Program-made: the position numbers and the translations under genes
The notes under the pieces: generated by a model
What the model was told of the DNA's origin: nothing
Database searches by the model: none
Seen by the model: the letters and a program-made list of their open reading frames with translations, nothing else
Shown here: one piece after another, positions 1 through 62,911 of the stretch
Position numbering within the stretch: the first letter of the stretch is position 1
How the letters are laid out: every line of letters starts with the position of its first letter
NCBI GenBank assembly: GCA_977017575.1
Contig: CDRNVI010000173.1
Span: 1-64,000 of the forward strand
Direction of reading: 5' to 3'
DNA length: 64,000 bases
From: Paramoeba atlantica
Lineage: Eukaryota; Protista; Discosea

Positions 1-494
1 GAAGAGATTAAATTTGAAGAAAGAAGAACATCAATCGTTTCTGGAATCAAATAATTCATCGAAAGTGCTTCAACGCTTTCACATTCGTTCATTTCTCGAC
101 AAACTGGACATTTCACTCCTTTCAAAGAAGAAAAAGAAGAGGAAGAAGAGGGAGAGGAAGAAGAAGAAGAGGAAGGATTTTGAAGAAGAAAGAGTTTGTT
201 GAGACAAAGAGAACAAAAAGAAAGACCACAACAAGGTAACAACCTTGGTTCTTTTTCCCAACTCATCAGCTCCAAACATATTCCACATTCAAATCTTTTC
301 TTTTTCTCTTCTTCTTCCTTTCTCCTTCTTTTCATCACCTCTTCTTCTCTTTCTCTCTCTTCTCCTTCTTCACTTTGTTGTTCTCTCTTTCCAAGAACAT
401 CCTCATTTCTTCTTTCTCTTTCTTCTTTTTCATCATCATCTTCCAATTCTGTTTCTCCCCCTCCTCTCTTTCTCTTTCCTCTTTTTTCACTCAT
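1..494 (-). CDS. TRIM-NHL paralog copy 0, exon 1 only (basic N-terminus + RING); continues off the window start
   Basis: ATG at 494 on the minus strand (MSEKRGKRKR...). The reverse complement encodes FECGICLELMSWEKEPRLLPCC, poly-Ser, VKCPV and SSNLIS, in the same layout as the other copies. Confidence 0.85.
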   Translation of the reverse strand, partial: MSEKRGKRKRGGGETELEDDDEKEERERRNEDVLGKREQQSEEGEEREREEEVMKRRRKEEEEKKKRFECGICLELMSWEKEPRLLPCCGLSFCSLCLNKLFLLQNPSSSSSSSPSSSSSFSSLKGVKCPVCREMNECESVEALSMNYLIPETIDVLLSSNLIS

Positions 495-860
495 TTTTTG
501 TCTCTCTCTGTGTGGGGAAAAGAGATCAATCAAACAAGAAGAAGAAGAAGAAAAGGGAGTTTAAAAATAGGTGGATGAACCAAAAGAAAAGAAAAGAAAA
601 GAAAAATACAAACATCTCTCAAAAAGACAGGAAAGGACAAAATGGAGGAGAGAGAGGGACGCAAAATCTATGACAACTATCCAAAGACGTCCAATTTTTT
701 CTTGGGTTGTGAAAAAAACAAGAGAGAAGAGAAAGAGAGAGAGAGAAGAAGAAGACTGAGAAGAGGAAGGGATTGAGAAGAAAAGAAAGAGACAGAGAGA
801 GAAAGGTCCCAAACGAAGACACAGAAGTGAGAGAAACAAAAAAGAAAAAAAAAAAGAAGT

Positions 861-904
861 TTTTTTCAGAGGTTTAAACAGTTTTGAATCGTCTTTTCGG
901 GCCC
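861..904 (-). promoter_or_regulatory. Conserved ~44-bp spacer element, copy 1 of 10
   Basis: TTTTTTCAGAGGTTTAAACAGTTTTGAATCGTCTTTTCGGGCCC, between divergent copies 0 and 1. Regulatory function is inferred. Confidence 0.55.
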
Positions 905-1571
905 TTTCTTTTTTCTTCCAGGTTTTTTCTGTTTCCTTTTCTTCCCTCTCTCTCTCGTTTTTCGTTTGGACCTCTTTAGTTGCCTGTGTCTTCGTTTTGG
1001 ACCTTTCTCTCTCTCTCTCTCTCCTTTTTCCCAAGAAGATTCTCTCTTCTCTTCTCTTTTTTTTTCAGACTCTTTTACTCAAAGTCTCCGCCTCCTCTCT
1101 TCCCTCTTGCTAAAAGAAGAAGAGTTTCTTCTCTTCTTCTTCTTTCTTCAACTTTGATCTTGTACCTTCTGAAGTGTTTTTCTTTTCTGTTTTTTGTCTC
1201 AATTTGAAAAAAAAAGTGGCAGAAAAAGCTCTCTCTCTCTCTCTTCTCTCTCTCTCTTCTCTCTCTTTGATTGGGAATTGGTTTTCTCCATTGTTCCCAC
1301 TTCATTTTTGTGTTTTGTTTTGGCAGCAGTCTCTCTCTCTTCTCTCTTTGTGCGTGGGATAGTTTTGGTTCAATTTTTTCTTTTTTTCCCTTTTTTTCTT
1401 TTTCCTTTTTCCCTATTTCTTTTTGAGGTGTTTTGTTTGTTCTTTTGTCTTTTGTTTTTTTGAAAAATGTTTGTTTTTTTCTTCTCTTTTCTTTTAAAAA
1501 TTGTTCATTGTTGCTTTTTCTTCTTTTTTTGTTGTTGATTGATCTTTTTTCCCACACAGAGAGACAAAAAA

Positions 1572-3821
1572 ATGAGCGAAAATAGAGGAAAGAGAAAGAG
1601 AGGAGAATCAGAATTAGAAACTGAGAAAAAGAGAAAAACCAAAAGAGGAAAGAAAGAGAAAGAAGATCAAACAACAGAGTGTGATGATGTTGTTATAATT
1701 GAAGAAGAAGATGATGATGATGATGAAAGAGAAAGAAGAAGTGAGGAGGTTCTTGGAAAGAGAGAACAACAAAATGAAGAAGGAGAAGAGAGAGAAAGAG
1801 AAGAAGAGGTGATGAAGAGAAGAAGAAAGGAAGAAGAAGAGAAAAAGAAAAGATTTGAATGTGGAATATGTTTGGAGCTGATGAGTTGGGAAAAAGAACC
1901 AAGGTTGTTACCTTGTTGTGCTCTTTCTTTTTGTTCTCTTTGTCTCAACAAACTCTTTCTTCTTCAAAATCCTTCTTCCTCCTCTTCCTCTTCTTCTTTC
2001 TCATATCTTTCTTCCTCTTCCTCTTCCTCTTCTTCTTCTATGAGAGGAGTGAAATGTCCAGTTTGTCGAGAAATGAACGAATGTGAAAGCGTTGAAACAC
2101 TTTCAATGAATTATTTGATTCCAGAAACGATTGATGTTCTTCTTTCTTCAAATTTGATCTCTTTCTCCAATCAATCAGGTTTTTTCTCCATTTTTTTGAA
2201 CTCTCACTTTCTTTCTTTCTTTCCTCTTTTTTTTGAAAGAAAGCTATTTCAAATTGTTGAAAAACATATTTTTTGAACAGGAGATGGTGGATCAGAATGT
2301 GTGAATTTCGAAACGTGTGGAGAACGAACTCAAATGTATTGTTCTGATTGTAAAATGTTTATTTGTGATTCTTGTGATCCATCTCACACTTCAACTATTT
2401 TCACTCAAAATCACAAACGATCTGAAAGAGACGGTGTTGAGGGAGGTGGAAGAAGAAGAAGATTGGAAGAGGAGGGGGTGATGGGAGTGATGGGATTGGA
2501 GAATTTGAAGAAGAGAGAATGTTCAAAACACCCATCTGAAACAATTTGTGGATATTGTTTTCAATGTTCTTCTTTTGTTTGTACTCGTTGTATTCTTGAA
2601 ACACATGATGATCATAATGAGAAAGTGAAATCAATTGAAGAAAGTATTTTGGAGAAGAGGGATGAAGTTGTAAAGATTGGAGATAAATTGGAGAGAAGAT
2701 TGATTTTGATTGAGAGGAAAAGAAAAAGAATTGAAAAAGAAATGAAAGAATTAGAAGAGAAATTAGAAAAGAAAAGAATTGAAAAGAAAGAAATAGAATT
2801 GGAGAAAGAAGATTTGAGAATCAGAAAAGATTCAATTATTCGTTTATCCAACACACCAACAACAACAACAACAACAACTGATTGTGATGTTTCTCTCTTT
2901 TTTGATGATCAACTTTTTTCAACTCTTCTTCAAACTGCAAATGATATTGTTTCTGAAGGAGGTGTTGTTGATTTACCAAAACCAAAGAAAGGAGTGATTT
3001 GTTGTGATGATTCTTTTCGTTTTGTTTCTTCTTTTCCTTTGAAGAATTATCCTTATGGAGTGAGTGTGAACAGTGATGGGAATATATTTATTTGTGAAGG
3101 GTTGGTGAGTGGATTGAAAGTGAGAGATAAAGAAGGAAATGAGATGATTGAATCAACAATTCAGAAAACAATTGATTCACTTCAGTTGGAACCTGTTGAT
3201 GTTTCAATTGGATTGAATGATCAAATTGTTGTTCTTGATTATTCTCAAGATTCTCAGAGAGTTGTAATCTTAAACAAAGAAGGAGAATTGATCAAATCTT
3301 TTGGATCAAAAGGTTCTCAAGATGGTCAGTTTTATGAACCACATGGTGTGGATGTAGATGAAGAAGGTAGAATTATTGTTGTTGACTCTGGAAATGATCG
3401 AATTCAAGTGTTTGATAATGATGGATCTTTTCTTCGTTCTTTTGGTTCAAAAGGTTCTTCTGAAAGTCAATTTAATGAACCAAACAGTGTTGTAGTTGAT
3501 AGAGATGGGAATATTGTTGTTTGTGATACTTGGAATCATCGGATTCAAGTGATGGATATTGAAGGGAATTTTATTCGATTTCTTGGAGGTTCAGGTGATT
3601 CTCAATTCGATTGTCCAAAAGGTGTTGATGTGGATGGGGAAGGTAGAATTGTTGTTTGTGATTCAGAAAATGAAAGAGTGAGTGTGTTTGAGAAAGATGG
3701 AACATTTCTTTTTTCGTTTGGTGAAGATCGCATGAATTATCCTTCTGGGGTTGTTGTTGATTCATTTGGAACAATTATTGTTTCAGATTTTGACAATAAG
3801 TCAATTGAGTTGTGGAAATAA
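1572..3821 (+). CDS. TRIM-NHL paralog copy 1 (RING-Bbox1-Bbox2-coiled coil-6xNHL), ~715 aa
   Basis: Exons 1572-2178 and 2281-3821, with a 102-nt phase-1 GT..AG intron that restores frame. B-box1 CVNFETC..CSDC..CDSC..H..H, B-box2 CSKH..CFQC..CTRC..HDDH, six NHL repeats. Confidence 0.92.
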
Positions 3822-4653
3822 TTTTGAAGAGAGGAGGAGGAAGGTTTTTTTTTTTCATTTTCTTTTCTCTTTATTTTGTTTTCATTTAACATGAGAAGTG
3901 TGGAGGTGTTTTTTTGTTTATTTTTTTATTTTTGTTTTTTTTATTTTTCTTTTTTTCTTTTTTCTTTTTGATTTGTTTATTTTTTGTGTCAATTTATTTT
4001 TGTTCTTTTTGTTTTCCCTTTTTTCTTGTTTTTGGAAGAAATTAATTTCTCTTTACCCTTCCTCTCCTCCTTTCCTCCTTTTAGTCTTGAGAACTGCACG
4101 GTCTTCTTCTTTCCAAATCAGCATTCTTCTCAATTTCGATTCGATTTTTATCCTTCTTCAAAAATTTTTCTCAATTTTTGCTTCTCCTCAAACTTTCTTC
4201 CTCTTTTTTTTAAAAAACGTTGAAGTCTAGAATGTTCCACAGAATATTCCCATGACAAAACAATGAATCCGAAAATCACTTTTCTGAATCGCCGAACAAC
4301 TTTCTGAGAAAATTTCCTTCGCCGAAATCCCGATCAAAACCGGATAATAAATCATTCTCATTTTTCCCAGCCCATTTGGTCTCGAGGAATTAACGAAAAA
4401 TTTCTTTTTTTTTTGTTTTCTTCGTTTGTTGAGATTTTTTTGTTCTTTTTTTGGTCTTCTCCCTTCTTTTTTTGTTTCCTTTTGTTCTTTTTGTTGAAGA
4501 AAGAAGAAAGAAAGAAAGAGATGAGAAACACACAAAGGGAGTGAGAAAAAAAAAAATCGGGAAAAATGAAAAAAGAAAAAGAAAAGAAGAAAAAGAAAAA
4601 TTCGAACCAAAACCACACAAAGGAAACAGAAAGTGAGAAAAAGAAAAAAGAAA

Positions 4654-4697
4654 GGGTCCGAAAAGACGATTCAAAACTTTTTAAACCTCTGAAAAAA
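4654..4697 (+). promoter_or_regulatory. Conserved ~44-bp spacer element, copy 2 of 10
   Basis: GGGTCCGAAAAGACGATTCAAAACTTTTTAAACCTCTGAAAAAA, upstream of copy 2. Confidence 0.55.
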
Positions 4698-5378
4698 ATA
4701 TCACAAAAACACACCAAAAACTTTTACTTTTTCGTTTTTCCCTCTCCTCTCTTCTCTCTCTCTTCTCTTCTCTTCTCTCTCTTTTCTCTCTCTCATTCAT
4801 TTGGGCTCTCTTTACCTTGTTTTGGGCTCTCTCTCTCCTTTCATTTTGGGGATTTTTCGTGTCACCATCTTTGCAATTTCTTCTTCTCTTTTGGAATCTC
4901 TTTCTTCTTCTCTTTTGGATCTCTCCTCTCTCCTTTTTTTCGTTTGTTTGGAGATCTCTTTCTTTCTCTTGGTGTTTCATATTTTGGAGCCTTTTTGGGT
5001 TATATTGTTTTTGTCTCTTTTCTTCTTTTCTCTTCACTTGCAAAAGAAGAAAAGCTTTCGTGACTTTTTGGGAGATGTTTGTATTTTTACTTTTCTTTCT
5101 TTTTTCTCCTTCCCATTTTTGAAAAAATTGGTAGAACCTCTTTCTCTCTCTCTCTCTTCTTTCTCTCTCTCTCTGTAGGACATTCTCTAAGAATTGGTTC
5201 TCTCTCCATTGTTCCTCTTTGTATTTCTTTTGTTTTGGGGGGGGGAGTACCAGTCTCTTTTGTGTGTGTGATAGTTTTTTGGTTTGATTTTTTCTTTTTT
5301 TCCTTTTTATTTCTTATTTTTTGTTGTATTGATTGATTTCTTTTTCCCACACACAGAGAAGAAGAGAAGAGAGACAAA

Positions 5379-7606
5379 ATGAGTGAAAAAAGAGGAAAGA
5401 GAAAAAGAGAAAGAGAAACAGAATTAGAAACTGAGAAAAAGAGAAAAACCAAAGGAGGAAAGAAAGAGAAAGAAGAAGAAGATGTTGTTGTTGAAATTGA
5501 AGATGACAATGATGAAAAAGAACAAAGGGAAAGAAGAAATGAGGATGTTCTTGGAAAGAGAGAACAACAAGCGGGACAAAATGAAGGAGAAGAAGGAGAA
5601 AGAGAAAGAGAAGAAGTGGTGATGAAAAGAAGAAGAAAGGAAGAAGAAGAGAAAAAGAAAAGATTTGAATGTGGAATATGTTTGGAATTGATGAATTGGG
5701 AAAAAGAACCAAGGTTGTTACCTTGTTGTGCTCTTTCTTTTTGTTCTCTTTGCCTCAACAAACTCTTTCTTCTTCAAAATCCTTCTTCTTCTTCTCCTTC
5801 TTCCTCTTCTTCTTCTTCTTCTTGTTCCTCTTTGAAAGGAGTGAAATGTCCAGTTTGTAGAGAAATGAACAAATGTGGAGCGATTGAAACACTTTCGATG
5901 AATTATTTGATTCCAGAAACGATTGATGTTCTTCTTTCTTCAAATTTGATTTCTTTCTCCCACCAAACAGGTTTTCTTTCTGTTTTTTGAGAGAAAGTTA
6001 TTTCAAAATTGAAAAAACATGTTTTTTGAAAAACAAAACAACAGGAGATGGTGGATCAGAATGTGTGAATTTCGAAACGTGTGGAGAACAAACTCGAATG
6101 TATTGTTCCCAATGCAACATGTTTATTTGTGATTCTTGTGATCCATCTCACACTTCTTCTCTTTTCACTCAAAATCACAAACGATCTGAAAGAGATGGTG
6201 TTGAGGGAAGAGGTGGAAGAAGAAGAAGATTGGAAGAGGAGGGAGGGGTGGTGGGAGTGATGGGATTGGAGAATTTGAAGAAGAGAGGATGTTCAAAACA
6301 CCCATCTGAAACAATTTGGGGATATTGTTTTCAATGTTCTTCTTTTGTTTGTGGTTGTTGTATTCTTGAAACACATGATGATCATAGAAAGAAAGTGAAA
6401 TCGATTGAAGAAAGTATTTTGGAGAAGAGAAAGGAAGTTGTAAAGATTGGAGATAAATTGGAGAAAAGATTGATTTTGATTGAAGAAGAAAGAAAAAAGA
6501 TTGAAAAAGAAATGAAAGAATTAGAAGAGAAATTAGAAAAGAAAAGAATTGAAAAGAAAGAAATAGAATTAGAGAAAGAAGATTTGAGAATAAGAAAAGA
6601 TTCAATTATTCGTTTATCCAACACACCAACAACAACAACAACAACAACAACTGATTGTGATGTTTCTCTCTTTTTTGATGATCAACTTTTTTCAACTCTT
6701 CTTCAAACTGCAAATGATATTGTTTTTGAAGGAGGTGTTGTTGGATTACTCAAACCAAAGAAAGGAGTGATTTGTTGTGATGGTGGTGGTGATTCTTTTC
6801 GTTTTGTTTCTTCTTTTCCTTTGGAGAATGTATCTTGTGGAGTGAGTGTGAATAGTGATGGGAATATTTTTATTTGTGAAGATGAGGGTGGATTGAGAGT
6901 GATAGATAAAGAAGGAAATGAGATGATTGAATCAACAATTCAGAAAACAATTGATTCACTTTATTTGGATCCTGTTGATGTTTCAATTGGATTGAATGAT
7001 CAAATTGTTGTTCTTGATTGTTCTCAAGATTCTCGTAGAGTTGTAATATTAAACAAAGAAGGAGAATTGATCAAATCTTTTGGATCTAATGGTTCTGAAG
7101 ATGGTCAGTTTAATAGTTCGTGTGGTGTGGATGTAGATGAAGAAGGTAGAATTATTGTTGCTGATACTTTGAATCATCGAATTCAAGTGTTTGATAATGA
7201 TGGATCTTTTCTTCATTCTTTTGGTTCAGAAGGTTCTTCTGAAAGTCAATTGAATGAACCTCACGGTGTTGTAGTTGATAGAGATGGGAATATTGTTATT
7301 TGTGATACTTGGAATCATCGAATTCAAGTGATGGATATTGAAGGGAATTTTATTCGATGTTTTGGAACAAAAGGTTCAGGTGATTCTCAATTGAACGAGC
7401 CAGAAGGTGTTGATGTTGATGGGGAAGGTAGAATTGTTGTTTGTGATTCAGGAAATGGAAGAGTGAGTGTGTTTGAGAAAGGTGGAACATTTCTTTTTTC
7501 GTTTGGTAAACCTCATGTGGTGAATCCTCTTGGGGTTGTTGTTGATTCATTTGGAACAATTATTGTTTCAGATTATGAGAAAAAGTCAATTGAATTTTGG
7601 AAATAA
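5379..7606 (+). CDS. TRIM-NHL paralog copy 2, ~717 aa
   Basis: Exons 5379-5970 and 6045-7606 (74-nt phase-1 intron); all domains intact. Confidence 0.92.
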
Positions 7607-8940: not shown

Positions 8941-11186
8941 TCAAAATGATTTCCACAATTCAATTGAATTTTTCACATAATCAGAAACAATAATTGTTCC
9001 AAATGAATCAATAACAACCCCATAAGGATCTTCCATGTGAGGTTTACCAAATGAAAAAAGAAATGTTCCATCTTTCTCAAACACACTCATTCTTCCATTT
9101 CCTCCATCACAAACAACAATTCTACCTTCCCCATCCACATCAACACCTCCTGGAGAGTTCAATTGAGAATCACCTGAACCTTCTGTTCCAAAACATCGAA
9201 TAAAATTCCCTTCAATATCCATCACTTGAATCCGATGATTTTTACAATCACAAATAACAATATTCCCATCTCTATCAACTACAACACTCTGAGGTACATT
9301 AAATTGACCATCAGAAGAACCTTTTGAACCAAAAGAACGAAGAAAAGATCCATCATTATCAAACACTTGAATTCGATGATTGTAAGTATCAGCAACAATA
9401 ATTCTACCTTCTTCATCTACATCCACACCACATGGGATATAAAACTGACCATCTTCAGAACCATTTGATCCAAAATAATTGAGCAATTCTCCTTCTTTGT
9501 TTAATATTACAACTCCATAAGAACCTTGAGAACAATCAAGAACAACAATTTGATCATTCAATCCAATTGAAACATCAACAGGTTCCAATTGAAGTGAATC
9601 AATTGTTTTCTGAATTGTTGATTCAATCATCTCATTTCCTTCTTTATCTCTTACTTCCAATCCACCATCCTCTTCGCAAATAAAAATATTCCCATCACTG
9701 TTCACATTCACTCCCAAAGTTCCATTCTTCAAAGGAAAAGAAGAAACAAAACGAAAAGAATCACCACCACCATCACAACAAATCACTCCTTTCTTTGGTT
9801 TGAGTAATCCATCAACAACACCTCCTTCAGAAACAATATCATTTGCAGTTTGAAGAAGAGTTGAAAAAAGTTGATCATCAAAAAAGAGAGAAACATCACA
9901 ATCAGTTGTTGTTGTTGTTGTTGGTGTGTTGGATAAACGAATAATTGAATCTTTTCTTATTCTCAAATCTTCTTTCTCTAATTCTATTTCTTTCTTTTCA
10001 ATTCTTTTCTTTTCTAATTTCTCTTCTAATTCTTTCATTTCTTTTTCAATTCTTTTTCTTTCTTTTTCAATCAAAATCAATCTTTTCTCCAATCTATCTC
10101 CAATCTTTACAACTTCATTCCTTTTCTCCAAAATACTTTCTTCAATCGATTTCACTTTCTTATTGTGTTGCACGTGTGTTTGAAGAATACAACAAACACA
10201 AACAAAAGAAGAACATTGAAAACAATATCCACAGATTGTTTCAGATGGGTGTTTTGAACATTCTCTCTTCTTCAAATTCTCCAATCCCATCACTCCCATC
10301 ACCACCACCCCCTCCTCTTCCAATCTTCTTCTTCTTCCACCTCCCTCAACACCATCTCTTTCAGATCGTTTGTGATTTCGAGTGAAAATAGAAGAAGTGT
10401 GAGATGGATCACAAGAATCACAAATAAACATGTTGCATTGGGAACAATACATTTGAGTTTGTTCTCCACATGTTTCGAAATTCGCACATTCTGATCCACC
10501 ATCTCCTGTTGTTTTGTTTTTCAAAAAACATGTTTTTTCAATTTTTAAATAACTTTCTCACAATAAAAAGAAGAAAGAAAACCTGGTTGGTGGGAGAAAG
10601 AAATCAAATTTGAAGAAAGAAGAACATCAATCGTTTCTGGAATCAAATAATTCATCGAAAGTGTTTCAATCGCTTCACATTTGTTCACTTCTCTACAAAC
10701 TGGACATTTCACTCCTTTCAAAGAGGAACAAGAAGAAGAAGAGGAAGAGGAAGAAGGAGAAGAGGAAGAAGGATTTTGAAGAAGAAAGAGTTTGTTGAGA
10801 CAAAGAGTACAAAAAGAAAGACCACAACAAGGTAACAACCTTGGTTCTTTTTCCCAACTCATCAATTCCAAACATATTCCACATTCAAATCTTTTCTTTT
10901 TCTCTTCTTCTTCTTTTCTTCTTCTTTTCATCACCTTTTCTTTTCTTTCTCTTTCTCTTTCTTCCTCTCCTTCTCCTTCATTTTGTCCCACTTGTTGTTC
11001 TCTCTTTCCAAGAACATCCTCATTTCTTCTTTTTCTTTCTTCTTTTTCATCATCTTCTTCTTCTTCAATTACAACAACAACATCAACATCATTTTCTTTC
11101 TCTTTTTTTCCTCTTTTGGTTTTTCTCTTTTTCTCAGTTTCTAATTCTGATTCTCCTCTCTTTCTCTTTCCTCTATTTTCGCTCAT
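8941..11186 (-). CDS. TRIM-NHL paralog copy 3, ~722 aa
   Basis: Exons 11186-10583 and 10505-8941 (77-nt phase-1 intron); all domains intact. Confidence 0.92.
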
Positions 11187-11962
11187 TTTTTTGTCTCTCT
11201 GTGTGGGGAAAAGAGATCAATCAACAATAAAAAAAGAAGAAAAAGCAACAATGAACAATTTTTAAAAGAAAAGAGAAGAAAAAAACAAACATTTTTCAAA
11301 AAAACAAAAGACAAAAGTACAAACAAAACACCTCAAAAAGAAATAGGGAAAAATGAAAAAGAAAAAAAGGAAAAAAAAGAAAAAATTGAACCAAAACTAT
11401 CCCACGCACAAAGAGAGAAGAGAGAGAGAGACTGCTGCCAAAACAAAACACAAAAATGAAGTGAGGAACAATGGAGAAAACCAATTCCCAATCAAAGAGA
11501 GAGAAGAGAGAGAGAGAAGAGAGAGAGAGAGAGCTTTTTCTGCCACTTTTTTTTTTTCAAATTGAGACAAAAAACAGAAAAGAAAAACACTTCAGAAGGT
11601 ACAAGATCAAAGTTGAAGAAAGAAGAAGAAGAGAAGAAACTCTTCTTCTTTTAGCAAGAGGGAAGAGAGGAGGCGGAGACTTTGAGTAAAAGAGTCTGAA
11701 AAAAAAAGAGAAGAGAGAATCTTCTTGGGAAAAAGGAGAGAGAGAGAAAGAGAAAGGTCCAAAACGAAGACACAGGCAACTAAAGAGGTACAAACAAAAA
11801 GGAGAGAGAGGGAAGAAAAGGAAACAGAAAAAACACAAAAGAAAAAAGAAAGGGTCCAAACGAGAGGAGGAAGAGAAGAGAGAAGAAAGAGACAGAGAGA
11901 GAAAGGTCCCAAACGAAGACACAGAAGAGAGAGAGAGGAAAAACAAAAAACAAAAAAAAAGG

Positions 11963-12006
11963 TTTTTTCAGATGTTTAAAAAGTTTTGAATCGTCTTTTC
12001 AGACCC
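11963..12006 (-). promoter_or_regulatory. Conserved ~44-bp spacer element, copy 3 of 10
   Basis: TTTTTTCAGATGTTTAAAAAGTTTTGAATCGTCTTTTCAGACCC, between divergent copies 3 and 4. Confidence 0.55.
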
Positions 12007-19170: not shown

Positions 19171-19214
19171 GGGTACGAAAAGAGGATTCAAAACTTTTTA
19201 AACCTCTGAAAAAA
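19171..19214 (+). promoter_or_regulatory. Conserved ~44-bp spacer element, copy 4 of 10
   Basis: GGGTACGAAAAGAGGATTCAAAACTTTTTAAACCTCTGAAAAAA, between divergent copies 5 and 6. Confidence 0.55.
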
Positions 19215-31389: not shown

Positions 31390-31421
<32 letters not shown>

Positions 31422-36067: not shown

Positions 36068-36098
<31 letters not shown>

Positions 36099-46004: not shown

Positions 46005-46048
46005 TTTTTTCAGAGGTTTAAAAAGTTTTGAATCCTCTTTTCGTACCC
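46005..46048 (-). promoter_or_regulatory. Conserved ~44-bp spacer element, copy 8 of 10
   Basis: TTTTTTCAGAGGTTTAAAAAGTTTTGAATCCTCTTTTCGTACCC, between divergent copies 14 and 15. Confidence 0.55.
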
Positions 46049-49169: not shown

Positions 49170-51447
49170 TTATTTCCACAATTCAATTGACTTTTTCTTC
49201 CAATCAGAAACAATCATTGTTCCAAATGAATCAACAACAATCCCAGTCGGACACTTCATGTGATGTTGACCAAACGAAAAAAGAAATGTTCCATCTTTCT
49301 CAAACACACTCACTTTTTCATTTCCTCGATCACAAACAACAATTCTACCTTCCCCATCCACATCAACACCTTTTGGACAATCGAATTGAGAATCATCTGA
49401 ACCATATGTTCCAAAACATCGAATAAAATTCCCTTCAATATCCATCACTTGAATCCGATGATTCAAACGATCAGAAATAACAATATTCCCATCTCCATCA
49501 ACTCCAACACTGTTTGGTTCATTAAATAGACCTTCAGAAGAACCAAATGAACCAAAAGAACAAAGAAAAGATCCATCATTATCAAACACTTGAATTCGAT
49601 GATTGCAAGTATCAGCGACAATAATTCGACCTTCTTCATCCACATCCACACCCCATGGTTCATCAAACTGACCATCTTCATCACCAAATGATCCAAAAGA
49701 TTTGATCAATTCTCCTTCTTTGCGTAGGACTACAACTCTATGAGAATCTTGAGACCAATCAAGAACAACAATTTGATCATTCAATCCAATTGAAACATCA
49801 ACAGGATCCAACTGAAGTGAATCAATTGTTTTCTGAATTGTTGATTCAATCATCTCATTTCCTTCTTTATCTATCACTCTCAATCCATCATCTTCACAAA
49901 CAAAAATATTCCCATCACTGTTCACACTCACTCCATGAGGTTGATTCTTCAAAGGAAAAGAAGAAACAAAACGAAAAGAATCACCACCACCATCACAACA
50001 AATCACTCCTTTCTTTCCAAATCCAACAATCCCTCCTTCAGAGACAATATCAGTTGCAGTTTGAAGAAGAGTTGAAAAAAGTTGATCATCAAAAAAGAGA
50101 GAAACATCACAATCAGTTGTTGTTGTTGTTGTTGGTGTGTTGGATAAACGAATAATTGAATCTTTTCTGATTCTCAAATCTTCTTTCTCTAATTCTATTT
50201 CTTTCTTTTCAATTCTTTTCTTTTCTAATTTCTCTTCTAATTCTTTCATTTCTTTTTCAATTCTTTTTCTTTTCCTCTCAATCAAAATCAATCTTTTCTC
50301 CAATTTATCTCCAATCCTCACAACTTCATTTCTCTTCTCCAAAATACTTTCTTCAATTGATTTCACTTTCTTTCTGTGATCATCATGAGTTTCAAGAATA
50401 CAACGAGTACAAACAAAAGAAGAACATTGAAAACAAAATCCACAAATTGTTTCAGCTGGGTGTTTTGAACATTCTCTCTTCTTCAAATTCTCCAATCCCA
50501 CTCTCACCACCCCCTCCTCTTCCAATCTTCTTCTTCTTCCACCTCCCCCAACACCATCTCTTTCAGATCGTTTGTGATTTCGAGAGAAAATAGTTGAAGT
50601 GTGAGATGGATCACAAGAATCACAAATAAACATGTTGCAATCAGAACAATACATTTGAGTTTGTTCTCCACACATTTCGAAATTCACACATTCTGATCCA
50701 CCATCTCCTGTTTAAAATATATGTTTTTCAACAATTTGAAATAGCTTTTTTTCAAAAAAGAGGAAAGGGAAAGAGAGGGAAGAAAGAGAGGAAGTTCAAA
50801 AAATGGAAATAAAAACCTGATTGATTGGAGAAAGAGATCAAATTTGAAGAAAGAAGAACATCAATCGTTTCTGGAATCAAATAATTCATCGAAAGTGTTT
50901 CAACACTTTCACATTCGTTCATTTCTCGACACACTGGACATTTCACTCCTTTCAAAGAGGAAGGAGAGGAAGGAGAGGGGGAGGGAGAAGAAGAAGAAGA
51001 GGAAGAATTTTGAAGAAGAAAGAGTTTGTTGAGACAAGGAAAACAAAAAGAAAGACCACAACAAGGTAACAACCTTGGTTCTTTTTCCCAATTCATCAAC
51101 TCCAAACAGATTCCACATTCAAATCTTTTCTTTTTCTCTTCTTCCTTTCTTCTTCTCTTCATCACCACTTCTTCTCTTTCTCTTTCTCCTTCTTCTTCTC
51201 CTTCATTTTGTCCCACTTGTTGTTCTCTCTTTCCAAGAACATCCTCACTTCTTCTTCTTTCTCTTTGTTCTCTTTCATCAACATCATCTTCAATCACAAC
51301 AACATCAACATCTTCTTCTTCAATCACAACAACATCATCATCGTCAAGAGGAATTTGTTCTTTCTTTCCTCTTTTTAATTTTTTCCCCTCCTCCTCACTC
51401 CCACTTCTCACCACTTCTCTCTTTCTCTTTCCTCTTTGATCACTCAT
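49170..51447 (-). CDS. TRIM-NHL paralog copy 16, ~722 aa
   Basis: Exons 51447-50817 and 50707-49170 (109-nt phase-1 intron). Confidence 0.92.
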
Positions 51448-51969: not shown

Positions 51970-52013
51970 GGGTCCGAAAAGACGATTCAAAACTTTTTTA
52001 ACATCTGAAAAAA
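51970..52013 (+). promoter_or_regulatory. Conserved ~44-bp spacer element, copy 9 of 10
   Basis: GGGTCCGAAAAGACGATTCAAAACTTTTTTAACATCTGAAAAAA, between divergent copies 16 and 17. Confidence 0.55.
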
Positions 52014-52572: not shown

Positions 52573-54895
52573 ATGGGTGAAAATAGAGGAAAGAGAAAGA
52601 GAGGAGAAACAGAATTGGAAACTGAGAAAAAGAAAAAAACCAAAAGAGGAAAGAAAGAGAAAGAAGAAGAACAAACAACAAATCATGGTGATGATGTTGT
52701 TGTAATTGAAGAAGAAGAAGATGGTGATGATGAAATAAGAGAAAGAAGAAGTGAGGATGTTCTTGGAAAGAGAGAACAACAAAATGAAGGAGAAAGAGAA
52801 AGAGAAGAAGAAGAGGTGATGAAGAGAAGAAGAAAGGAAGAAGAAGAGAAAAAGAAAAGATTTGAATGTGGAATATGTTTGGAGTTGATGAGTTGGGAAA
52901 AAGAACCAAGGTTGTTACCTTGTTGTGGTCTTTCTTTTTGTTCTCTTTGTCTCAACAAACTCTTCCTTCTTCAAAATCCTTCCTCTTTCTCTTCCCCATC
53001 TCCCCCTCCTTCTTCTTCTTCCTCTCCTTCTCCCTCTTCTTCCTCAACATCTTCTTCCTCATCACCTTCTTCTTTCTCATCTCTCTCTTCTCCCTCTTCT
53101 TCTTCCTCTTCCTCTTTGAAAGGAGTGAAATGTCCAGTTTGTAGAGAAATGAACGAATGTGAAAGCGTTGAATCACTTTCGATGAATTATTTGATTCCAG
53201 AAACGATTGATGTTCTTCTTTCTTCAAATTTGATCTCTTTCTCCAATCAATCAGGTTTTTTCTCCCTTTTTTTGAACTTCCTCTCTTTCTTTCCTCTCTT
53301 TTCTTTGTTGAGAAAAAGTTATTTGAAGTTGTTGAAAAATATATTAAATATTTTTGAAAAAACAGGAGATGGTGGAATGAATTTCGAAACGTGTGGAGAA
53401 CAAACTCAAATGTTTTGTTCTGATTGTAAAATGTTTATTTGTGATTCTTGTGATCCATCTCACACTTCAACTCTTTTCTCTCAAAATCACAAACGATCTG
53501 AAAGAGATGGTGTTGAGGGAGGTGGAAGAAGAAGAAGATTGGAAGAGGAGGAGGAGGGGGTGGTGGGAGTGATGGGATTGGAGAATTTGAAGAAGAGAGA
53601 ATGTTCAAAACACCCATCTGAAACAATTTGTGGATATTGTTTTCAATGTTCTTCTTTTGTTTGTACTCATTGTATTCTTGAAACACATAACAAACACAAT
53701 GAGAAAGTGAAATCAATTGAAGAAAGTATTTTGGAGAAAAGGAATGAAGTTGTAAAGATTGGAGAGAAGATTGATTGTAATTGAAAGGAAAAGAAATAGA
53801 ATTGAAAAAGAAATGAAAGAATTAGAAGAGAAATTAGAAAAGAAAAGAATTGAAAAGAAAGAAATAGAATTGGAGAAAGAAGATTTGAGAATCAGAAAAG
53901 ATTCAATCATTCATTTATCCAACACACCAACAACAACAACAACAACTGATTGTGATGTTTCTCTCTTTTTTGATGATCAACTTTTTTCAACTTTTCTTCA
54001 AACTGCAAATGATATTGTTTCTGAAGGAGTTGTTGTTGGATTATTCTCAAAACCAAAGAAAGGAGTGATTTGTTGTGATGGTGGTGGTGATTTGATTCGA
54101 GTTGTTTCTTCTTTTCCTTTAGAGAATGTACCTTTTGGAATGAGTGTGAACAGTGATGGGAATATTTTTATTTGCGAAGGTGACCAATTGAGTGTGAGAG
54201 ATAAAGAAGGAAATGAGATTGGTTCAATTCAAAAAACAATTGATTCACTTCAGTTGGAACCTGTTGATGTTTCAATTGGATTGGATGATCAAATTGTTGT
54301 TCTTGATCATTCTCAAGATTCTCGGAGAGTTGTAATCTTAAACAAAGAAGGAGAATTGATCAAATCTTTTGGATCAAATGGTTCTGAAGATGGTCAGTTT
54401 AATTCTCCATATGGTGTGGATGTGGATGAAGAAGGTAGAATTATTGTTGTTGATACTTTGAATCATCGAATTCAAGTGTTTGATAATGATGGATCTTTTC
54501 TTTGTTCTTTTGGTTCATTTGGTTCTTCTGAAGGTCAATTTCATGGACCAAACAATGTTGTAGTTGATGGAGATGGGAATATTATTATTTCTGATACTTT
54601 CAATCATCGGATTCAAGTGATGGATATTGAAGGGAATTTTATTCGATGTTTTGGAACATTTGGTTCAGGTGATTCTCAATTGCGTTATCCAAGAGGTGTT
54701 GATGTTGATGGGAAAGGTAGAATTGTTGTTTGTGAAGAAGGAAACAGAAGAGTGAGTGTGTTTGAGAAAGATGGAACATTTCTTTTTTCATTTGGTAAAC
54801 ATCACATGAAAGATCCTTATGGGATTGTTATTGATTCATTTGGAACAATTATTATTTCTGATTGGGAGAAGAAGTCGATTGAATTTTGGAAATAA
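52573..54895 (+). pseudogene. TRIM-NHL copy 17, frameshifted at the start of the coiled coil
   Basis: Intron 53255-53365 (111 nt). An 11-nt deletion near 53758 (ATTGGAGATAAATTGGAG to ATTGGAG) gives a stop at 53784. The coiled coil-NHL ORF 53759..54895 is otherwise intact. Confidence 0.85.
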
Positions 54896-55938: not shown

Positions 55939-57507
55939 TCAAAATGATTTCCAAAATTCAATTGACTTATTCTCATAATCTGAAACAATAATTGTTCCAA
56001 ATGAATCAATAACAACCCCATTAGGATCTCTCATATGATGTTGACCAAACGAAAAAAGAAATGTTCCATCTTTCTCAAACACACTCACTCTTCTATTTCC
56101 TGTATCACAAACAAAAATTCTACCTTCCCCATCCACATCAACACTTCCCGGACAATCGAATTGAGAATCACCTGAACCTTCTGTTCCAAAACATCGAATA
56201 AAATTCCCTTCAATATCCATCACTTGAATCCGATGATTCCCCACATCAGAAATAACAATATTCCCATCTCTATCAACTACAACACCATAAGGTTGATCAA
56301 ATTGACCTTCAGAAAAACCAAAAGAACCAAAAGAACGAAGAGAAGATCCATCATTATCAAACACTTGAATTCGATCATTTCCAGAGTCAGCAACAATAAT
56401 TCGACCTTCTTCATCCACATCCACACCACATGGTCGGTGAAACTGACCATCTTCAGAACCACTTGATACAAAAGATTTGATCAATTCTCCTTCTTCGTTT
56501 AAGATTACAACTCGATAACAATCTTGAGAATGATCAAGAACAACAATTTGATCATTCAATCCAATTGAAACATCAACAGGTATCAACTGAAGTGAATCAA
56601 TTGTTTTCTGAATTGTTGATTCAATCATCTCATTTCCTTCTTTATCTCTCACTTTCAATCCACCCTCACCTTCACAAATAAAAATATTCCCATCACTGTT
56701 CACACTCACTCCATAAGGTTGATTCTTCAAAGGAAAAGAAGAAACAACACGAATCGAATCACCACCACCATCACAACAAATCACTCCTTTCTTTGGTTTT
56801 GAGAATAATCCAACAACAACTCCTTCAGAAACAATATCAGTTGCAGTTTGAAGAAGAGTTGAAAAAAGTTGATCATCAAAAAAGAGAGAAACATCACAAT
56901 CAGTTGTTGTTGTTGTTGGTGTGTTGGATAAACGAATGATTGAATCTTTTCTGATTCTCAAATCTTCTTTCTCTAATTCTATTTCTTTCTTTTCAATTCT
57001 TTTCTTTTCTAATTTCTCTTCTAATTCTTTCATTTCTTCTTCAATCTTTTTTCTTTTCTTTTCTATCAAAATCAATCTTTTCTCCAATTTATCTCCAATC
57101 TTTACAACTTCACTCCTTTTCTCCAAAATACTTTCTTCAATTGATTTCACTTTCTCATTATGATCATCATGTGTTTCAAGAATACAACGAGTACAAACAA
57201 AAGAAGAACATTGAAAACAATATCCACAGATTGTTTCAGATGGGTGTTTTGAACATTCTCTTTTCTTCAAATTCTCCAATCCCATCACTCCCACCACCCC
57301 CTCCTCCTCCAATCTTCTTCTTCTTCCACCTCTTCCCTCAACACCATCTCTTTCAGATCGTTTGTGATTTCGAGTGAAAATGTTTGAGGTGTGAGATGGA
57401 TCACAAGAATCACAAATAAACATTTTACAATCAGAACAAAACATTCGAGTTTGTTCTCCACACGTTTCGAAATTCGCACATTCTGATCCATCTCCTGTTG
57501 TTTTGTT
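55939..57507 (-). pseudogene. TRIM-NHL copy 18: exon 2 intact, exon 1 (RING) and promoter missing
   Basis: Exon 2 runs 57494-55939, preceded only by the intron's last 13 nt (AACAAAACAACAG). It then abuts copy 19. Confidence 0.85.
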
Positions 57508-57563
57508 ACCTTCTATATTGTGGTGATGAACAACAAAATGAAGGAGAAAGAGAAGAAGAGGTG

Positions 57564-59647
57564 ATGAAAAGAAGAAGAAAGGAAGAAGAAGAGAAAAAGA
57601 AAAGATTTGAATGTGGAATCTGTTTGGAGTTAATGAATTGGGAAAAAGAACCAAGGTTGTTACCTTGTTGTGGTCTTTCTTTTTGTACTCTTTGTCTTAC
57701 CAAACTCTTTCTTCTTCAAAATCCTTCTCCTTCTTCTTCCTCTTCTTCTTCTTCTCTTTCTCCTTCTCCTTCTCCTTCTCCCTCTTCTTCTTCTTCCTCT
57801 TCTTCTTCTTCTCTTTCTCCTTCTCCCTCTCCCTCTCCTTGTTTCTCTTCTTCTTCCTCTTCTTCCTCCTCTCCTTCTTTGAAAGGAGTGAAATGTCCAG
57901 TTTGTAGAGAAATGAACGAATGTGAAAGCGTTGAAACACTTTCGATGAATTATTTGATTCCAGAAACGATTGATGTTCTTCTTTCTTCAAATTTGATCTC
58001 TTTCTCCAATCAACCAGGTTTTTTTCTCCACTTTGGAACTCTCACTTTCTTTCCTCTTTCCTTTCTTTCTTCCTTGAAAAACATAATTTTGAAAAAGAAA
58101 CAACAGGAGATGGTGGATCAAAATGTGTAAATTTCGAAACGTGTGGAGAACGAACTCAAATGTATTGTTCTGCTTGCAACATGTTTATTTGTGATTCTTG
58201 TGATCCATCTCACACTTCAACTATTTTCACTCAAAATCACAAACGATCTGAAAGAGATGGTGTTGAGGGAGGTGGAAGAAGAAAAAGATTGGAAGAGGAG
58301 GGAGGGGTGGTGGGAGTGGGATTAGAGAATTTGAAGAAGAGAGAATGTTCAAAACACCCATCTGAAACAATTTGTGGATTTTGTTTTCAATGTTCTTCTT
58401 TTGTTTGTACTCGTTGTATTCTTGGTACACATGATGATCACAATAAGAAAGTGAAATCAATTGAAGAAAGTATTTTAGAGAAAAGGAATGAAGTTGTAAA
58501 GATTGGAGATAAATTGGAGAAAAGATTGATTTTGATTGAAAAGAAAAGAAAAAGAATTGAAGAAGAAATGAAAGAATTAGAAGAGAAATTAGAAAAGAAA
58601 AGAATTGAAAAGAAAGAAATAGAATTAGAGAAAGAAGATTTGAGAATCAGAAAAGATTCAATCATTCGTTTATCCAACACACCAACAACAACAACAACAA
58701 CTGATTGTGATGTTTCTCTCTTTTTTGATGATCAACTTTTTTCAACTCTTCTTCAAACTGCAACTGATATTGTTTCTGAAGGAGGTGTTGTTGGATTACT
58801 CAAACCAAAGAAAGGAGTGATTTGTTGTGATGGTGGTGGTGATTCAATTCGTTTTGTTTCTTCATTTCCTTTGACAAAAGGAACTTTGGGAGTGAGTGTG
58901 AACAGTGATGGGAATATTTTTATTTGTGAAGATGACGGATTGAGGGTGAGAGATAAAGAAGGAAATGAGATTGGTTCAATTCAGAAAACAATTGATTCAT
59001 TTGAGTTGGAACCTGTTGATGTTTCAATTGGATTGAATGATCAAATTGTTGTTATTGATTGGTCTTCTTATCGAGTTGTAATCTTAAACAAAGAAGGAGA
59101 ATTGATCAAATCTTTTGGATCAAAAGGTTCTGAAGATAGTCAGTTTGATGATCCAAATGGTGTGGATGTAGATGAAGCAGGTCGAATTATTGTTGCTGAT
59201 ACTGACAACCACCGAATTCAAGTGTTTGATAATGATGGATCTTTTCTTCATTCTTTTGGTTCAAAAGGTTCTTCTGATGGTCAATTTAATCAACCAAATA
59301 GTGTTGTAGTTGATGGAGATGGGAATATTGTTGTTTGTGATTCTGGAAATGATCGGATTCAAGTGATGGATATTGAAGGGAATTTTATTCGATGTTTTGG
59401 AACAAAAGGTTCAGGTCCTTCTCAATTAAACGAGCCACAAGGTGTTGATGTGGATGGGGAAGGTAGAATTTTTGTTTGTGATACAGGAAACAGAAGAGTG
59501 AGTGTGTTTGAGAAAGATGGAACATTTCTCTTTTCGTTTGGTAAACATCGCATGGAAGATCCTTTTGGGGTTGTTATTGATTCATTTGGAACAATTATTG
59601 TTTCTGATTGGGAGAAGAAGTCAATTGAATTGTGGAAATCGTTTTGA
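57564..59647 (+). CDS. TRIM-NHL copy 19, N-terminally truncated (~664 aa if started at the internal ATG 57564)
   Basis: Homology begins abruptly at ~57528 (EQQNEGE). Exons 57564-58017 and 58107-59647 (89-nt intron). The normal ATG, leader and spacer are deleted, so expression is uncertain. Confidence 0.65.
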
Positions 59648-60760
59648 AGAGAGGAGGAAGAAAGGGTTTGTTTTTTTTTCATTTTCTTTTCTCTTGATTT
59701 TTATTTTTTTTTTCACTGGGACTTTGTTTTTTCTTCTTTCTTTTTTCTTTTTCTTGATTTCATTTGTTTTTTTTTTCAATTATTTTATTCCTCTCCTCCT
59801 CTTCCTTTTAGTCTCTGGGCGCTCTTTTTGTTCCCAACACATCTTCTTCAATTTCGATTCGATACTTTTCTTTGTGTGTTGTATTATGTTGTGGATGTTC
59901 TCTCTTTTTTCCTATTTTGTTTTCTCTTCAAATTTTGGAGGTATTTTTTTCCTCTTTGCTTTGTTTTCTTGATTTGTTTTTATTTTTTTTCTTTTTAATT
60001 TTTTTTTTGAGAATTTACTTCTGATCTTTTTTTTGTTTGTGTGAACAGAAAAATAGATCTTCCTATGAGTCTTCTCCTCTCTTTATGTTTTGTTTTGTGT
60101 GCGTTAGATGGATCAACTTTATTGGCTCTTTTGTGTAAAAAAAAGACCTCCTCTCTCTCCTTCCTTTCTCTTGTGTTGTGTTGTGTTGTGAAATTCTGTC
60201 TTCTTTCTCCTTTTCTTTTCGATGTTTTTTGTTTTTTTTTTTGTTCCAAATGCCTCTTCCCTCTCCTCACTTCACTCCTTTCTGTTTCTCTTTCTTTCAT
60301 TTGTTTTGATTTTTGGGTGGATTTCTCAGTTCTTCATCCTTTTTGTGGAATAATACTTTGGTTTTTTTTGGTTGATTAAATGATTCAAATTTCTTTTCAA
60401 TTCTTTCCTTTTCTTTTTCCATTTTTCTCTCATTAAAAAAGCATTGAGGATCTTCATTCAACAAAAAGTCTACAAAAACACAAAATTTGCAAAACAGAGA
60501 AGAGAAGAAGACAGAATCTAACACAATCACAAAAGAGAGGATTTGAGGAGAAAGTCTGTTTTTTTTTCACACAAAAGAATAAAAAAAAATTCTTTGAAGT
60601 TGATCATCTCAACACAAAAGAGAAGAGAACAGAAAGAGAGGTCCCAAAGTGAGAATTCAACAACAAACAAAAAAGATCATCAGTGATTTTCTCAAAAAAA
60701 AAAACCACCAAAAAAAGCACAACAAAACCAAAAGAGAAAATAAATTCAACAAAAAACAAA

Positions 60761-62911
60761 TTAGTTGTTCCATAATTCAATGGACCAGGTATCAAAATCT
60801 AAAACAAGAATTGATCCAAATGAATCAATAACAACCCTAGTAGGGTTCTCCATGTAACCTTTACCAAACGAAAAAAGAAATGTTCCATCTTTCTCAAACA
60901 CACTCACCCTTTTGTTTACTTCTTCACAAACAACAATTCTACCTTCTCCATCCACATCAACACTTAGTGGACCATTGATTCGAGAATCACGTGAACCTTT
61001 TCTTCCAAAACATCGAATAAAATTCCCTTCAATATCCATCACTTGAATCCGGTCATTCCCAGAATCACAAACAACAATATTTCCATCTCTGTCAACTCCA
61101 ACACCGTTTGGTTGATTGAATTGACCTTCAGAAGAACCTTTCGAACCAAAAGAACGAAGAAAAGATCCATCATTATCAAACACTTGAATTCGATCATTCA
61201 AAGTATCAGCGACAATAATTCGACCTTCTTCATCCACATCCACACCACCTGGTTCATCAAACTGACCATCTTCATCACCATCTGATCCAAAAGATTTGAT
61301 CAATTCTCCTTCTTCGTTTAAGATTACAACTCGAAAAGAATCTTGAGACCAATCAAGAACAACAATTTGATCATTCAATCCAATTGAAACATCAATAGGT
61401 TTCAACTGAAGTGAATCAATTGTTTTCTGAATTGTTGATTCAATCATCTCATTTCCTTCTTTATCTCTCACTCTCAATCAATCACCTTCACAAACAAAAA
61501 TATTCCCATCACTGTTCACACTCATTCCCCAAGGTCGATTCTTCAAAGGAAAAGAAGAAACAACACAAAAAGAATCACCACCACCATCACAACAAATCAC
61601 TCCTTTCTTTCGAAACCCAACTCCTCCTTCGAAAACAATATCATTTGCAGTTTGAAGAAGAGTTGAAAAAAGTTGATCATCAAAAAAAAGAGAAACATCA
61701 CAATCAGTTGTTGTTGTTGTTGTTGGTGTGTTGGATAAACGAATAATTGAATCTTTTCTGATTCTTAAATCTTCTTTCTCCAATTCTATTTCTTTCTTTT
61801 CAATTCTTTTCTTTTCTAATTTATCTTCTAATTCTTTCATTTCTTCTTCAATCTTTTTTCTTTCTTCCTCAATCACAATCAATCTTTTTTCCAATTTATC
61901 TCCTATCTTCACAACTTCATTTCTCTTCTCTAAAATACTTTCTTCAATCGATTTCACTTTCTTTCTGTGATCATCATGCGTCCCAAGAATACAACAAACA
62001 CAAACAAAAGAAGAACATTGAAAACAATATCCACTGATTGTTTCAGATGGGTGTTTTGAACATTCTCTCTTCTTCAATTTCTCTAATCCCACCACCCCCA
62101 CCTCCAATCTTCTTCTTCCACCTCCCTCAACACCATCTCTTTCAGATCGTTTGTGATTTCGAGTGAAAATGTTTGAAGTGTGAGATGGATCACAAGAATC
62201 ACAATAAACATATCACATTTGGAACAAAACATTTGAGTTCGTTCTCCACACGTTCCAAAATTGGCACATTCCATTCCTCCATCTCCTATTTTGGTTTCTT
62301 TTTCATCAATTCAAGAGAGAAGGAAGGTTGACAAGAAAAGAGAGAAAAATTAAGAAAAGTGAAAAAAAACTTGATTGATTGGAGAAAGAGAGCAAATTTG
62401 AAGAAAGAAGAACATCAATCGTTTCTGGAATCAAATAATTCATCGAAAGTGTTTCAATCGTTTCACATTCGTTCATTTCTCTACACACTGGACATTTCAC
62501 TCCTTTCTTCTTCTTTTCAGTTTGTAATGAAGATGAGCATGAAGAGGAAGAGGAAGAAGAAGAAGAAGGATTTTGATGATGAAAGAGATTGTTGAGACAA
62601 AGAGAGCAAAAAGAAAGACCACAACAAGGTAACAACCTTGGTTCTTTTTCCCAACTCATTAACTCCAAACATATTCCACATTCAAATCTTTTCTTTTTCT
62701 CTTCTTCTTCTTTCTCTCTTCTTCTCTTTATTCTCTCTCCTTCTTCTCTCTCTTTTCTTTGTTGTTCTTGATCTTCTATTTCTTGTTCTTCTCCAATATC
62801 ACTTTCATCATCATCCTTAGTTTGTTCTTTTGTTTTTCGTTTATCCTTCTTCTTCTCACTTTTCACAATCTCTATTCCTCCTCTCTTTTTCTCTCCTTTT
62901 CCTTCACTCAT
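60761..62911 (-). pseudogene. TRIM-NHL copy 20, with a frameshift and a nonsense codon
   Basis: Exon 1 is 62911-62371 and exon 2 starts at 62285 (85-nt intron). A 1-nt deletion near 62203 falls in B-box1 (TTTATTGTGAT versus TTTATTTGTGAT). In-frame TGA at 61480-61478 in NHL blade 1. Confidence 0.85.

Follow-up and report, generated by a model that had tools for sequence, protein, structure and literature searches.

The window analyzed in this work, the first 64,000 nucleotides of contig CDRNVI010000173.1 of Paramoeba atlantica (C173:1-64000; GenBank assembly GCA_977017575.1, 45.7 Mb, 34% G+C), carries an array of TRIM-NHL genes in which neighbouring copies lie mostly on opposite strands. A tblastn search with the 744-amino-acid (aa) open frame of one copy (c9, 30955-33186) identified 21 copies of this gene, designated c0 to c20, in the strand order - + + - + - + - + (14-3-3-like +, LUC7-like -) + - + - + - + - + - + -, which exactly reproduced the order given in the original prediction, made from the DNA letters alone. 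Five of the 21 copies (c10, c13, c14, c15, and c18) were fragmentary, and c0 was additionally truncated by the contig start. The gene bodies were about 2.3 kb in size with 80-92% identity, and the head-to-head and tail-to-tail spacers between them, about 0.5-2 kb in size, were asymmetric. The window contained part of a family of approximately 90 genes encoding RING, B-box, coiled-coil, and NHL regions, about half of which were aligned; all queries were single exons or open frames and not joined (spliced) gene models.

In the open frame of c9, two B-box stretches (PF00643, 33 bits versus a Pfam cut-off of 24) and C-terminal NHL repeats (PF01436, 94 bits) were found, whereas the RING match (PF13639, E-value = 0.0015, 19 bits) was under the cut-off of 27.3 bits, with the cysteine pattern visible in the translation. 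The Glu/Lys-rich heptad-like stretch between the B-boxes and the NHL repeats was coiled-coil-like by eye in the translations. Fragments aside, each copy had its own RING exon, B-boxes, coiled-coil stretch, and NHL domain, and 33 of the 37 3' exons analyzed on contigs C173, C139, and C215 were open. A 141-bp period with about 70% identity, detected inside the 3' exons by Tandem Repeats Finder (7141-7447, 14347-14658, and 37375-37710), is, as judged from the DNA, the NHL blade repeat. The predicted products are clearly assigned by Pfam to RING/B-box/coiled-coil/NHL ligase-like proteins, and the term "receptor" used in the original prediction was a guess. It should be noted that in c9 (31600-31700) and c12 (40620-40790), the pyrimidine-rich stretch between the RING and B-box exons remained in frame, which gave single long open reading frames (ORFs) with a Phe/Ser/Leu-rich insert, whereas in the other copies the frame was broken at this stretch; the stretch resembles a short intron, which c9 and c12 could read through.

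Within the window, 18 of the 20 adjacencies alternated in strand (binomial P = 2 × 10−4 if they are independent). Both breaks were located where they had been predicted, between c1 and c2 and between c8 and c9, where a housekeeping pair intervenes. Since the left part of the c1/c2 spacer (3819-5507) matched the 3' flank of c4 (14756-15335) and was joined directly to the right half of the c5/c6 head-to-head spacer (from 19060), the first break is, on this flank evidence, the scar of a deletion of about 3.7 kb in which a minus-strand copy was lost. The second break contained two ORFs with partial 14-3-3-like and LUC7-like domains (Pfam). Every copy and fragment was mapped in 190 kb from contigs C173, C139, C213, and C215, and for the other contigs only hit tables of the 3' and RING exons were used. 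Alternation was found in 22 of 23 adjacencies in C139, 21 of 24 in the whole of C173, and 9 of 10 in C215. Across the family, about 65 of 77 neighbour pairs alternated with C213 left out (P = 3 × 10−10 under an assumption of independent pairs that does not hold); nor do the arrays count as independent samples, as C213 is a 95-99% copy of the window region. Meanwhile, an older and more distant TRIM-NHL subfamily (57-60% identity) on contig C164 (about 114-426 kb) was arranged in same-strand runs several kb apart and lacked the spacer element described below; therefore, alternation belongs to the young subfamily and is common to neither the gene type nor the genome. Self-comparison and phylogeny, proposed as checks in the original prediction, revealed inverted sister pairs and no homologous block beyond one gene with its flanks, so that a giant palindrome between the window halves was rejected; a palindrome with arms of about 3.6 kb was present in C215. 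In C139, a plus-strand copy was interrupted between NHL residues ~662 and 663 by about 2.5 kb of unrelated DNA (259680-262180), which may be an insertion.

The asymmetric spacer element of the original prediction was real, with nine matches at no more than three mismatches (0 expected) and a tenth copy, at 41892, lacking 1 bp, and its ten orientations (-,+,-,+,-,+,+,-,+,+) were confirmed; its predicted length of 44 bp was not, as the conserved core was about 50-54 bp. The element was restricted to head-to-head spacers, where it occurred once per spacer, mid-spacer and outside coding DNA, and marked a switch of the top strand from purine-rich to pyrimidine-rich. Its flanks were of two types, a and b, alternating along the window array. 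Genome-wide, 37 copies of the element were found, all on contigs with these arrays, and it was more than 90% conserved versus a difference of 24-37% in the surrounding spacer; an Rfam scan of the window, including the element, gave no match. The head-to-head spacers as a whole were asymmetric, their 700-bp arms following the element orientation in 90 of 101 informative pairwise comparisons, with most discordant cases involving type b spacers, in which the arms are alike. Differentiation of the arm types stopped at about the ATG and was nil within the gene (synonymous divergence (dS) of gene bodies of 0.12, compared with raw upstream-arm distances of 0.24-0.37). The tail-to-tail spacers were likewise asymmetric and present in both orientations, with one class recurring at seven places. 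A per-gene comparison of 5'-flank with 3'-flank side showed no linkage (P = 0.71), but this value was set aside as uninformative about independent flipping, since partners across a tail-to-tail spacer mostly have a common 5' side and the table is thereby balanced by construction. On the spacer tree, element orientation changed as often as in shuffles (C173: 4 vs. 4.07). At the same time, consecutive elements mirrored each other across the tail-to-tail spacer between them in 12 of 15 instances (P = 0.018), and this order, together with the C215 palindrome, therefore favours inverted duplication followed by propagation and not frequent independent flipping, which would randomise the orientations.

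When the c0/c1 and c3/c4 spacers were compared, their arms aligned in inverted orientation (978 bp at 91.8% and 766 bp at 75%), whereas the central 230 bp with the element aligned directly (87%). Thus, a small historical inversion, in which an element-bearing loop of about 230 bp was flipped between these spacers, is real on the BLAST map, on which this result rests; loop-only alignments with hand-set borders were misleading because the inverted repeats of the c3/c4 spacer overlap. Four of the type b spacers had a loop of 135-159 bp enclosed by inverted repeats 30-55 bp long. Besides those at 758-985 and 11802-12056, loops were located at 41788-41994 and C173:66982-67199. Whole-spacer inversions perhaps also occurred.

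Recent structural changes were traced in near-identical copies of the region. Contig C213 (40.5 kb) was a reverse-oriented, collinear copy of C173:17.4-63.5 kb with 95-99% identity, distributed unevenly (99.5% over the 14-3-3 region and 94.5% over c8), and from its sequence would be either the other haplotype (allele) or a very recent paralogous segmental duplicate. A 94-96% copy of window positions 28.8-37.9 kb, including the 14-3-3/LUC7 pair, was located at C139:290-299.5 kb. The assembly thereby contained three copies, with 95-99% identity, of the two ORFs (14-3-3-like and LUC7-like) together with the adjacent c9-type gene and c10 fragment, and the c10-type fragment adjoined the c9-like gene in C213 and C139 as well. 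Among the seven spacers common to the near-identical copies (C173 versus C213 and C139), no inversions were found, versus at least five indels; the alignment gap at the c7/c8 spacer reflected divergence and not a flip. Compared with C173, C213 had a 7.7-kb indel spanning c17 to c19 and a chimeric gene with c11-like sequence in its 5' two-thirds (96-100%) and other sequence in its 3' third (87-92%), with c12 and the neighbouring spacers absent. This chimera is the product of exchange between c11 and c13, same-strand copies two positions apart, with removal of a gene pair. In C213, the counterparts of c14 and c15 were intact, in contrast to the fused (tail-to-tail) and 3'-truncated copies of C173, and an additional pair of fused fragments was located at one end of C213 (36759-37911).

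Two deletions in the window fused neighbours at the centres of the inverted-repeat units, c13 with c14 tail-to-tail (43495-43497) and c18 with c19 head-to-head (57516-57522), and the C213 pair was the third such case, so that deletions seem to favour these centres. A fold-back origin of the c13/c14 fusion was rejected, as the two fragments were only 81.5% alike and the c14 counterpart was intact in C213. Contig C228 had hit statistics nearly identical to those of C139:269-285 kb, down to a common pseudogene carrying three TGA codons, and may be a second near-duplicate contig, in this case of the C139 array.

In the maximum-likelihood tree of 45 complete 3' exons, strand labels were unclustered (changes within contigs versus shuffles: C173, 6 vs. 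6.6; C139, 4 vs. 4.3), as was the side of the head-to-head spacer on which a gene lay. Adjacent inverted neighbours were sister genes in several cases (c2/c3, two pairs in C215, and two in C139); other sister genes were two positions apart on the same strand. The squared correlation (r2) between variable sites of the paralogues was 0.245 at distances of 1-5 bp and dropped to about 0.05 past 6 bp, and about 55-60% of site pairs failed the four-gamete test at all longer distances. Variation therefore appears to be shuffled on a scale of 5-15 bp and not in blocks, with linkage gone within about 15 bp, which fits micro-conversion. The longest common tracts were located in the conserved coiled-coil part and showed no preference for orientation or adjacency. 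Hypervariable codons were found in the NHL domain in 22 of 23 cases, with a period of about 47 residues, and the ratio of nonsynonymous to synonymous substitution (dN/dS) at them was 2.4 versus 0.59 elsewhere, a contrast inflated by the choice of sites after the fact. The 3' exons of the near-identical region copies showed 6 to 86 differing sites, 65-90% of which had both variants represented among other paralogues, and many of the differences were clustered. For example, a 23-nt haplotype of the c8 counterpart in C213 was found exactly in four other copies, whereas the c8 version (a tract of about 14 bp, 28174-28196) was otherwise present only in c7, the inverted head-to-head neighbour of c8, and in the C213 copy of c7.

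Table. Coordinates of the TRIM-NHL copies, spacer elements, and neighbouring features (window positions unless a contig is given).
Feature	Position	Strand	Basis
c0, RING exon, truncated by C173 start	3..293	-	tblastn, query aa 104-215
Spacer element, type b	861..890	-	
Central loop of c0/c1 spacer, flanked by short inverted repeats; direct alignment with 11862-12086, both arms inverted	758..985	.	BLAST map
c1, TRIM-NHL copy	1854..3821	+	tblastn
c1/c2 spacer, deletion scar, first alternation break	3819..5507	.	flank matching
Spacer element, type a	4668..4697	+	
c2, TRIM-NHL copy	5379..7606	+	tblastn
c3, TRIM-NHL copy, sister of c2 across tail-to-tail spacer	8941..11186	-	tblastn, tree
Perfect 55-bp inverted repeat (11802-11856 / 12002-12056) around 145-bp element loop, c3/c4 spacer	11802..12056		
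Spacer element, type b	11963..11992	-	
c4, TRIM-NHL copy	12710..14817	+	tblastn
c5, TRIM-NHL copy	15990..18028	-	tblastn
Spacer element, type a	19185..19214	+	
c6, TRIM-NHL copy	20295..22586	+	tblastn
c7, divergent copy, ~80% identical to others	23171..25161	-	tblastn, self-comparison, tree
Spacer element, type b	25626..25655	-	
c8, TRIM-NHL copy with ~14-bp c7-type tract at 28174-28196	26075..28338	+	tblastn, tract comparison
14-3-3/LUC7 ORFs, with c9-type gene and c10 fragment next to them, three copies	28790-30954; C139:293624-299467; C213:25174-25919		
ORF, C-terminal half of 14-3-3 domain	29041..29688	+	PF00244, E-value = 2.7 × 10−18
ORF, part of LUC7 domain	29873..30403	-	PF03194, E-value = 4.6 × 10−13
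c9, divergent, single 744-aa open frame; weak RING, two B-boxes, NHL repeats	30955..33189	+	Pfam
c10, C-terminal fragment, aa 448-744	33662..34558	-	tblastn
Spacer element, type a	34811..34840	+	
c11, TRIM-NHL copy	35641..37868	+	tblastn
c12, TRIM-NHL copy	39107..41416	-	tblastn, Pfam
Spacer element, type b, 1-bp deletion	41892..41920	+	
c13, N-terminal fragment, tail-to-tail fusion with c14	42784..43495	+	tblastn
c14, fragment aa 104-550; C213 counterpart intact	43497..44940	-	tblastn, C213 alignment
Spacer element, type a	46005..46034	-	
c15, 3'-truncated; C213 counterpart longer	47131..48388	+	tblastn, C213 alignment
c16, TRIM-NHL copy	49170..51447	-	tblastn
Spacer element, type b	51984..52013	+	
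c17, TRIM-NHL copy	52573..54895	+	tblastn
c18, without RING exon, head-to-head fusion with c19, no spacer	55939..57516	-	tblastn
c19, first ~75 codons missing	57522..59647	+	tblastn
c20, TRIM-NHL copy, one in-frame TGA	60761..62911	-	tblastn
Spacer element, type a	63605..63634	+	

The explanation that we favour, with a probability of roughly 0.6, is that the alternating lattice is inherited and kept by ordinary recombination, while the diversity of the copies would come from short templated patches and selection on the NHL domain, with inversions as rare by-products. The alternation would most likely have been founded by one or a few inverted duplications and then propagated. Homologous exchange between same-strand copies would add or remove even numbers of genes, and exchange between opposite-strand copies could only convert or invert; since every homologous event would thus be even-numbered, converting, or inverting, the pattern would preserve itself, and only non-homologous deletions or insertions would break it. 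Diversification would proceed by micro-conversion through very short templated patches combined with selection on about 20 periodic NHL positions; block chimeras made by crossover would not be a source of diversity, and inversions would be rare relative to indels. The layout may have persisted because it makes frequent ectopic exchange safe.

Several observations weigh against this explanation. The arrays on contigs C150, C204, C175, and C228 were less strictly alternating (2/4 to 3/5 adjacencies each, as judged on hit tables only). Only one of about five recent structural events was a clean homologous exchange, the rest being non-homologous deletions; such deletions erode the alternation, and therefore something must regenerate it or select for it. 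Adjacent inverted pairs were only slightly closer to each other than other pairs (permutation P = 0.08), and the pairwise homoplasy index (PHI) test for recombination was not significant (P = 0.08) because incompatibility was high everywhere; part of the patchwork could therefore be a product of repeated mutation at hypervariable sites that resembles exchange. Finally, a cluster of 5 nt in the C213 counterpart of c6 had no donor anywhere in the assembly.

According to the original prediction, crossovers between inverted neighbours repeatedly invert the spacers and swap the 5' and 3' parts of the genes, which would be the main source of chimeras at constant copy number, in the manner of a shufflon. 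The lattice of inverted repeats that makes an array suited to inversion does exist, copy number changes in even-numbered blocks, as the c11 × c13 chimera shows, and the traces expected of inversion were partly found: homologous asymmetric spacers of both head-to-head and tail-to-tail kinds occurred in both orientations on one contig, orientation changes on the spacer tree were as frequent as in shuffles, the identity of the spacer side vanished inside the gene body, and one loop was flipped relative to its arms. Sequence exchange between inverted neighbours is also supported by the adjacent inverted sister genes and by the tract common to c8 and c7. However, inversion as a maker of chimeric genes is not supported, in view of its absence from the seven common spacers alongside at least five indels, the mirror order of the elements where randomised orientations would be expected, shuffling too fine for block chimeras to be visible, and common tracts that favoured neither inverted nor adjacent pairs, while the sole clear chimera arose by exchange between direct repeats. 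Furthermore, the only Pfam domains in the window were RING, B-box, NHL, 14-3-3, and LUC7, with no recombinase among them (the rest of the genome was not searched for one), no domain in eight spacer ORFs exceeded the Pfam threshold, and no conserved crossover site was found in coding DNA or at the borders of coding segments in the window, where the sole conserved short element lay mid-spacer. With every copy a complete gene, fragments aside, a shufflon-like mechanism is not supported, and the model as a whole is considered rather improbable. Pure tandem duplication of an ancient divergent pair or four-gene unit, with no exchange across strands and with plus and minus genes as two old lineages, would account for the alternation of type a and b head-to-head spacers, for the collinearity of the block c1-(deleted copy)-c2 with c4-c5-c6, and for same-strand sister genes two positions apart. 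However, strand did not cluster on the gene tree within any contig, several sister pairs were adjacent inverted neighbours, and spacers of one type stood in both orientations on one contig; plus and minus genes did not separate on the 3'-exon tree, and this scenario is unlikely.

Selection on expression would explain the layout if the head-to-head spacer were a shared two-way promoter built around the 50-bp element, with the loop possibly an orientation switch and convergent gene ends possibly giving antisense control. The strong conservation of the element within a divergent spacer, its confinement to these arrays with one copy per head-to-head spacer, the meeting of purine-rich and pyrimidine-rich halves at it, and the short inverted repeats around the loop in four type b spacers are consistent with such a role; meanwhile, the element had no Rfam match, the c18/c19 pair has lost its entire spacer, and fragments and single-gene deletions are tolerated, so that we assign this possibility a small chance. 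A narrower form of it, in which the loop of about 150-230 bp with the 50-bp element, flanked by inverted repeats of 37-55 bp, would be an invertible promoter choosing between two divergent TRIM-NHL genes, is highly speculative; if true, it would provide a eukaryotic counterpart of bacterial promoter switches, and the lattice would serve both expression choice and safe exchange. An assembly artefact, in which palindromic chimeric reads or mis-joins give false alternation, was also considered, as the arrays lay at contig ends or on short contigs (the start of C173, the end of C139, C213, and C215), where the assembler evidently struggled. Neighbours differed by 8-20% and each spacer was distinct, which excludes perfect fold-backs, and the layout was found again on other, independent contigs and in two diverged versions of the window region, making an artefact scarcely credible.

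Recognition-gene families must stay alike enough for exchange and yet avoid collapse by deletion, and a chain of inverted copies would solve this problem because exchange between neighbours cannot delete anything. The locus thus described offers a compact system, at about 3 kb per unit, for measuring the rates of micro-conversion, inversion, and deletion between inverted versus direct repeats, with the older same-strand subfamily on C164 as a built-in control.

Among known systems, the shufflon of plasmid R64 (pilV) relies on the site-specific recombinase Rci, short crossover sites at segment borders, and one expressed gene with alternative C-termini, and its orientations are mixed in culture. 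The TRIM-NHL array resembles it in that inverted repeats flank several segments whose inversion could, in principle, reassort protein ends while no DNA is lost. A dedicated recombinase, border crossover sites, and a single expressed gene were not found here, nor were mixed orientations between the near-identical region copies. Breakage-fusion-bridge ladders, often located near chromosome ends, likewise show head-to-head and tail-to-tail alternation of amplified units, but with spacer-less or unique junctions in a nested fold; such a pattern was rejected, as the same asymmetric spacer types a and b recurred many times, with type b in one orientation three times running. The ampliconic palindromes of primate sex chromosomes undergo arm-to-arm gene conversion and consist of single pairs of very long arms with more than 99.9% identity. 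Inverted gene-bearing arms around unique spacers, arm exchange, and occasional spacer inversion are common to both systems, whereas the present array chains at least 20 short arms (80-92% identity) whose NHL positions are under selection to differ. In the expanded TRIM families of animals, such as fish finTRIM and primate TRIM5, the hypervariable recognition domain is B30.2/SPRY. The constant RING/B-box/coiled-coil scaffold is similar, as is a C-terminal recognition domain that varies at a few surface positions, although NHL takes the place of B30.2/SPRY in the genes studied, and we know of no description of strict strand alternation for families of the finTRIM/TRIM5 type. A literature search for alternating arrays and for TRIM-NHL genes in protists yielded nothing useful.

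The closest known parallel in our analysis is the alternating-strand array of V pseudogenes in bird IGH loci, where inverted duplications averaging 2.8 kb have been described as proposed gene-conversion donors and inversions change rapidly within species (bioRxiv 10.64898/2026.09.05.749481). Both are palindrome-rich alternating arrays of short reverse-copied units (about 3 kb in P. atlantica), with copies similar enough that they could donate short conversion tracts, and both are hard to assemble and fall into short contigs. In contrast to the bird loci, where somatic conversion in B cells draws on mostly pseudogene donors to modify a single expressed gene, the P. atlantica array consists mostly of complete genes of a single-celled eukaryote with germline exchange; its variable domain is an NHL propeller in place of the Ig V domain, nothing implies an AID-type process, and no inversion was found between the near-identical region copies. 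The occurrence of an alternating layout in a germline family of a single-celled eukaryote, besides the bird antibody loci, suggests that it may be a general solution.

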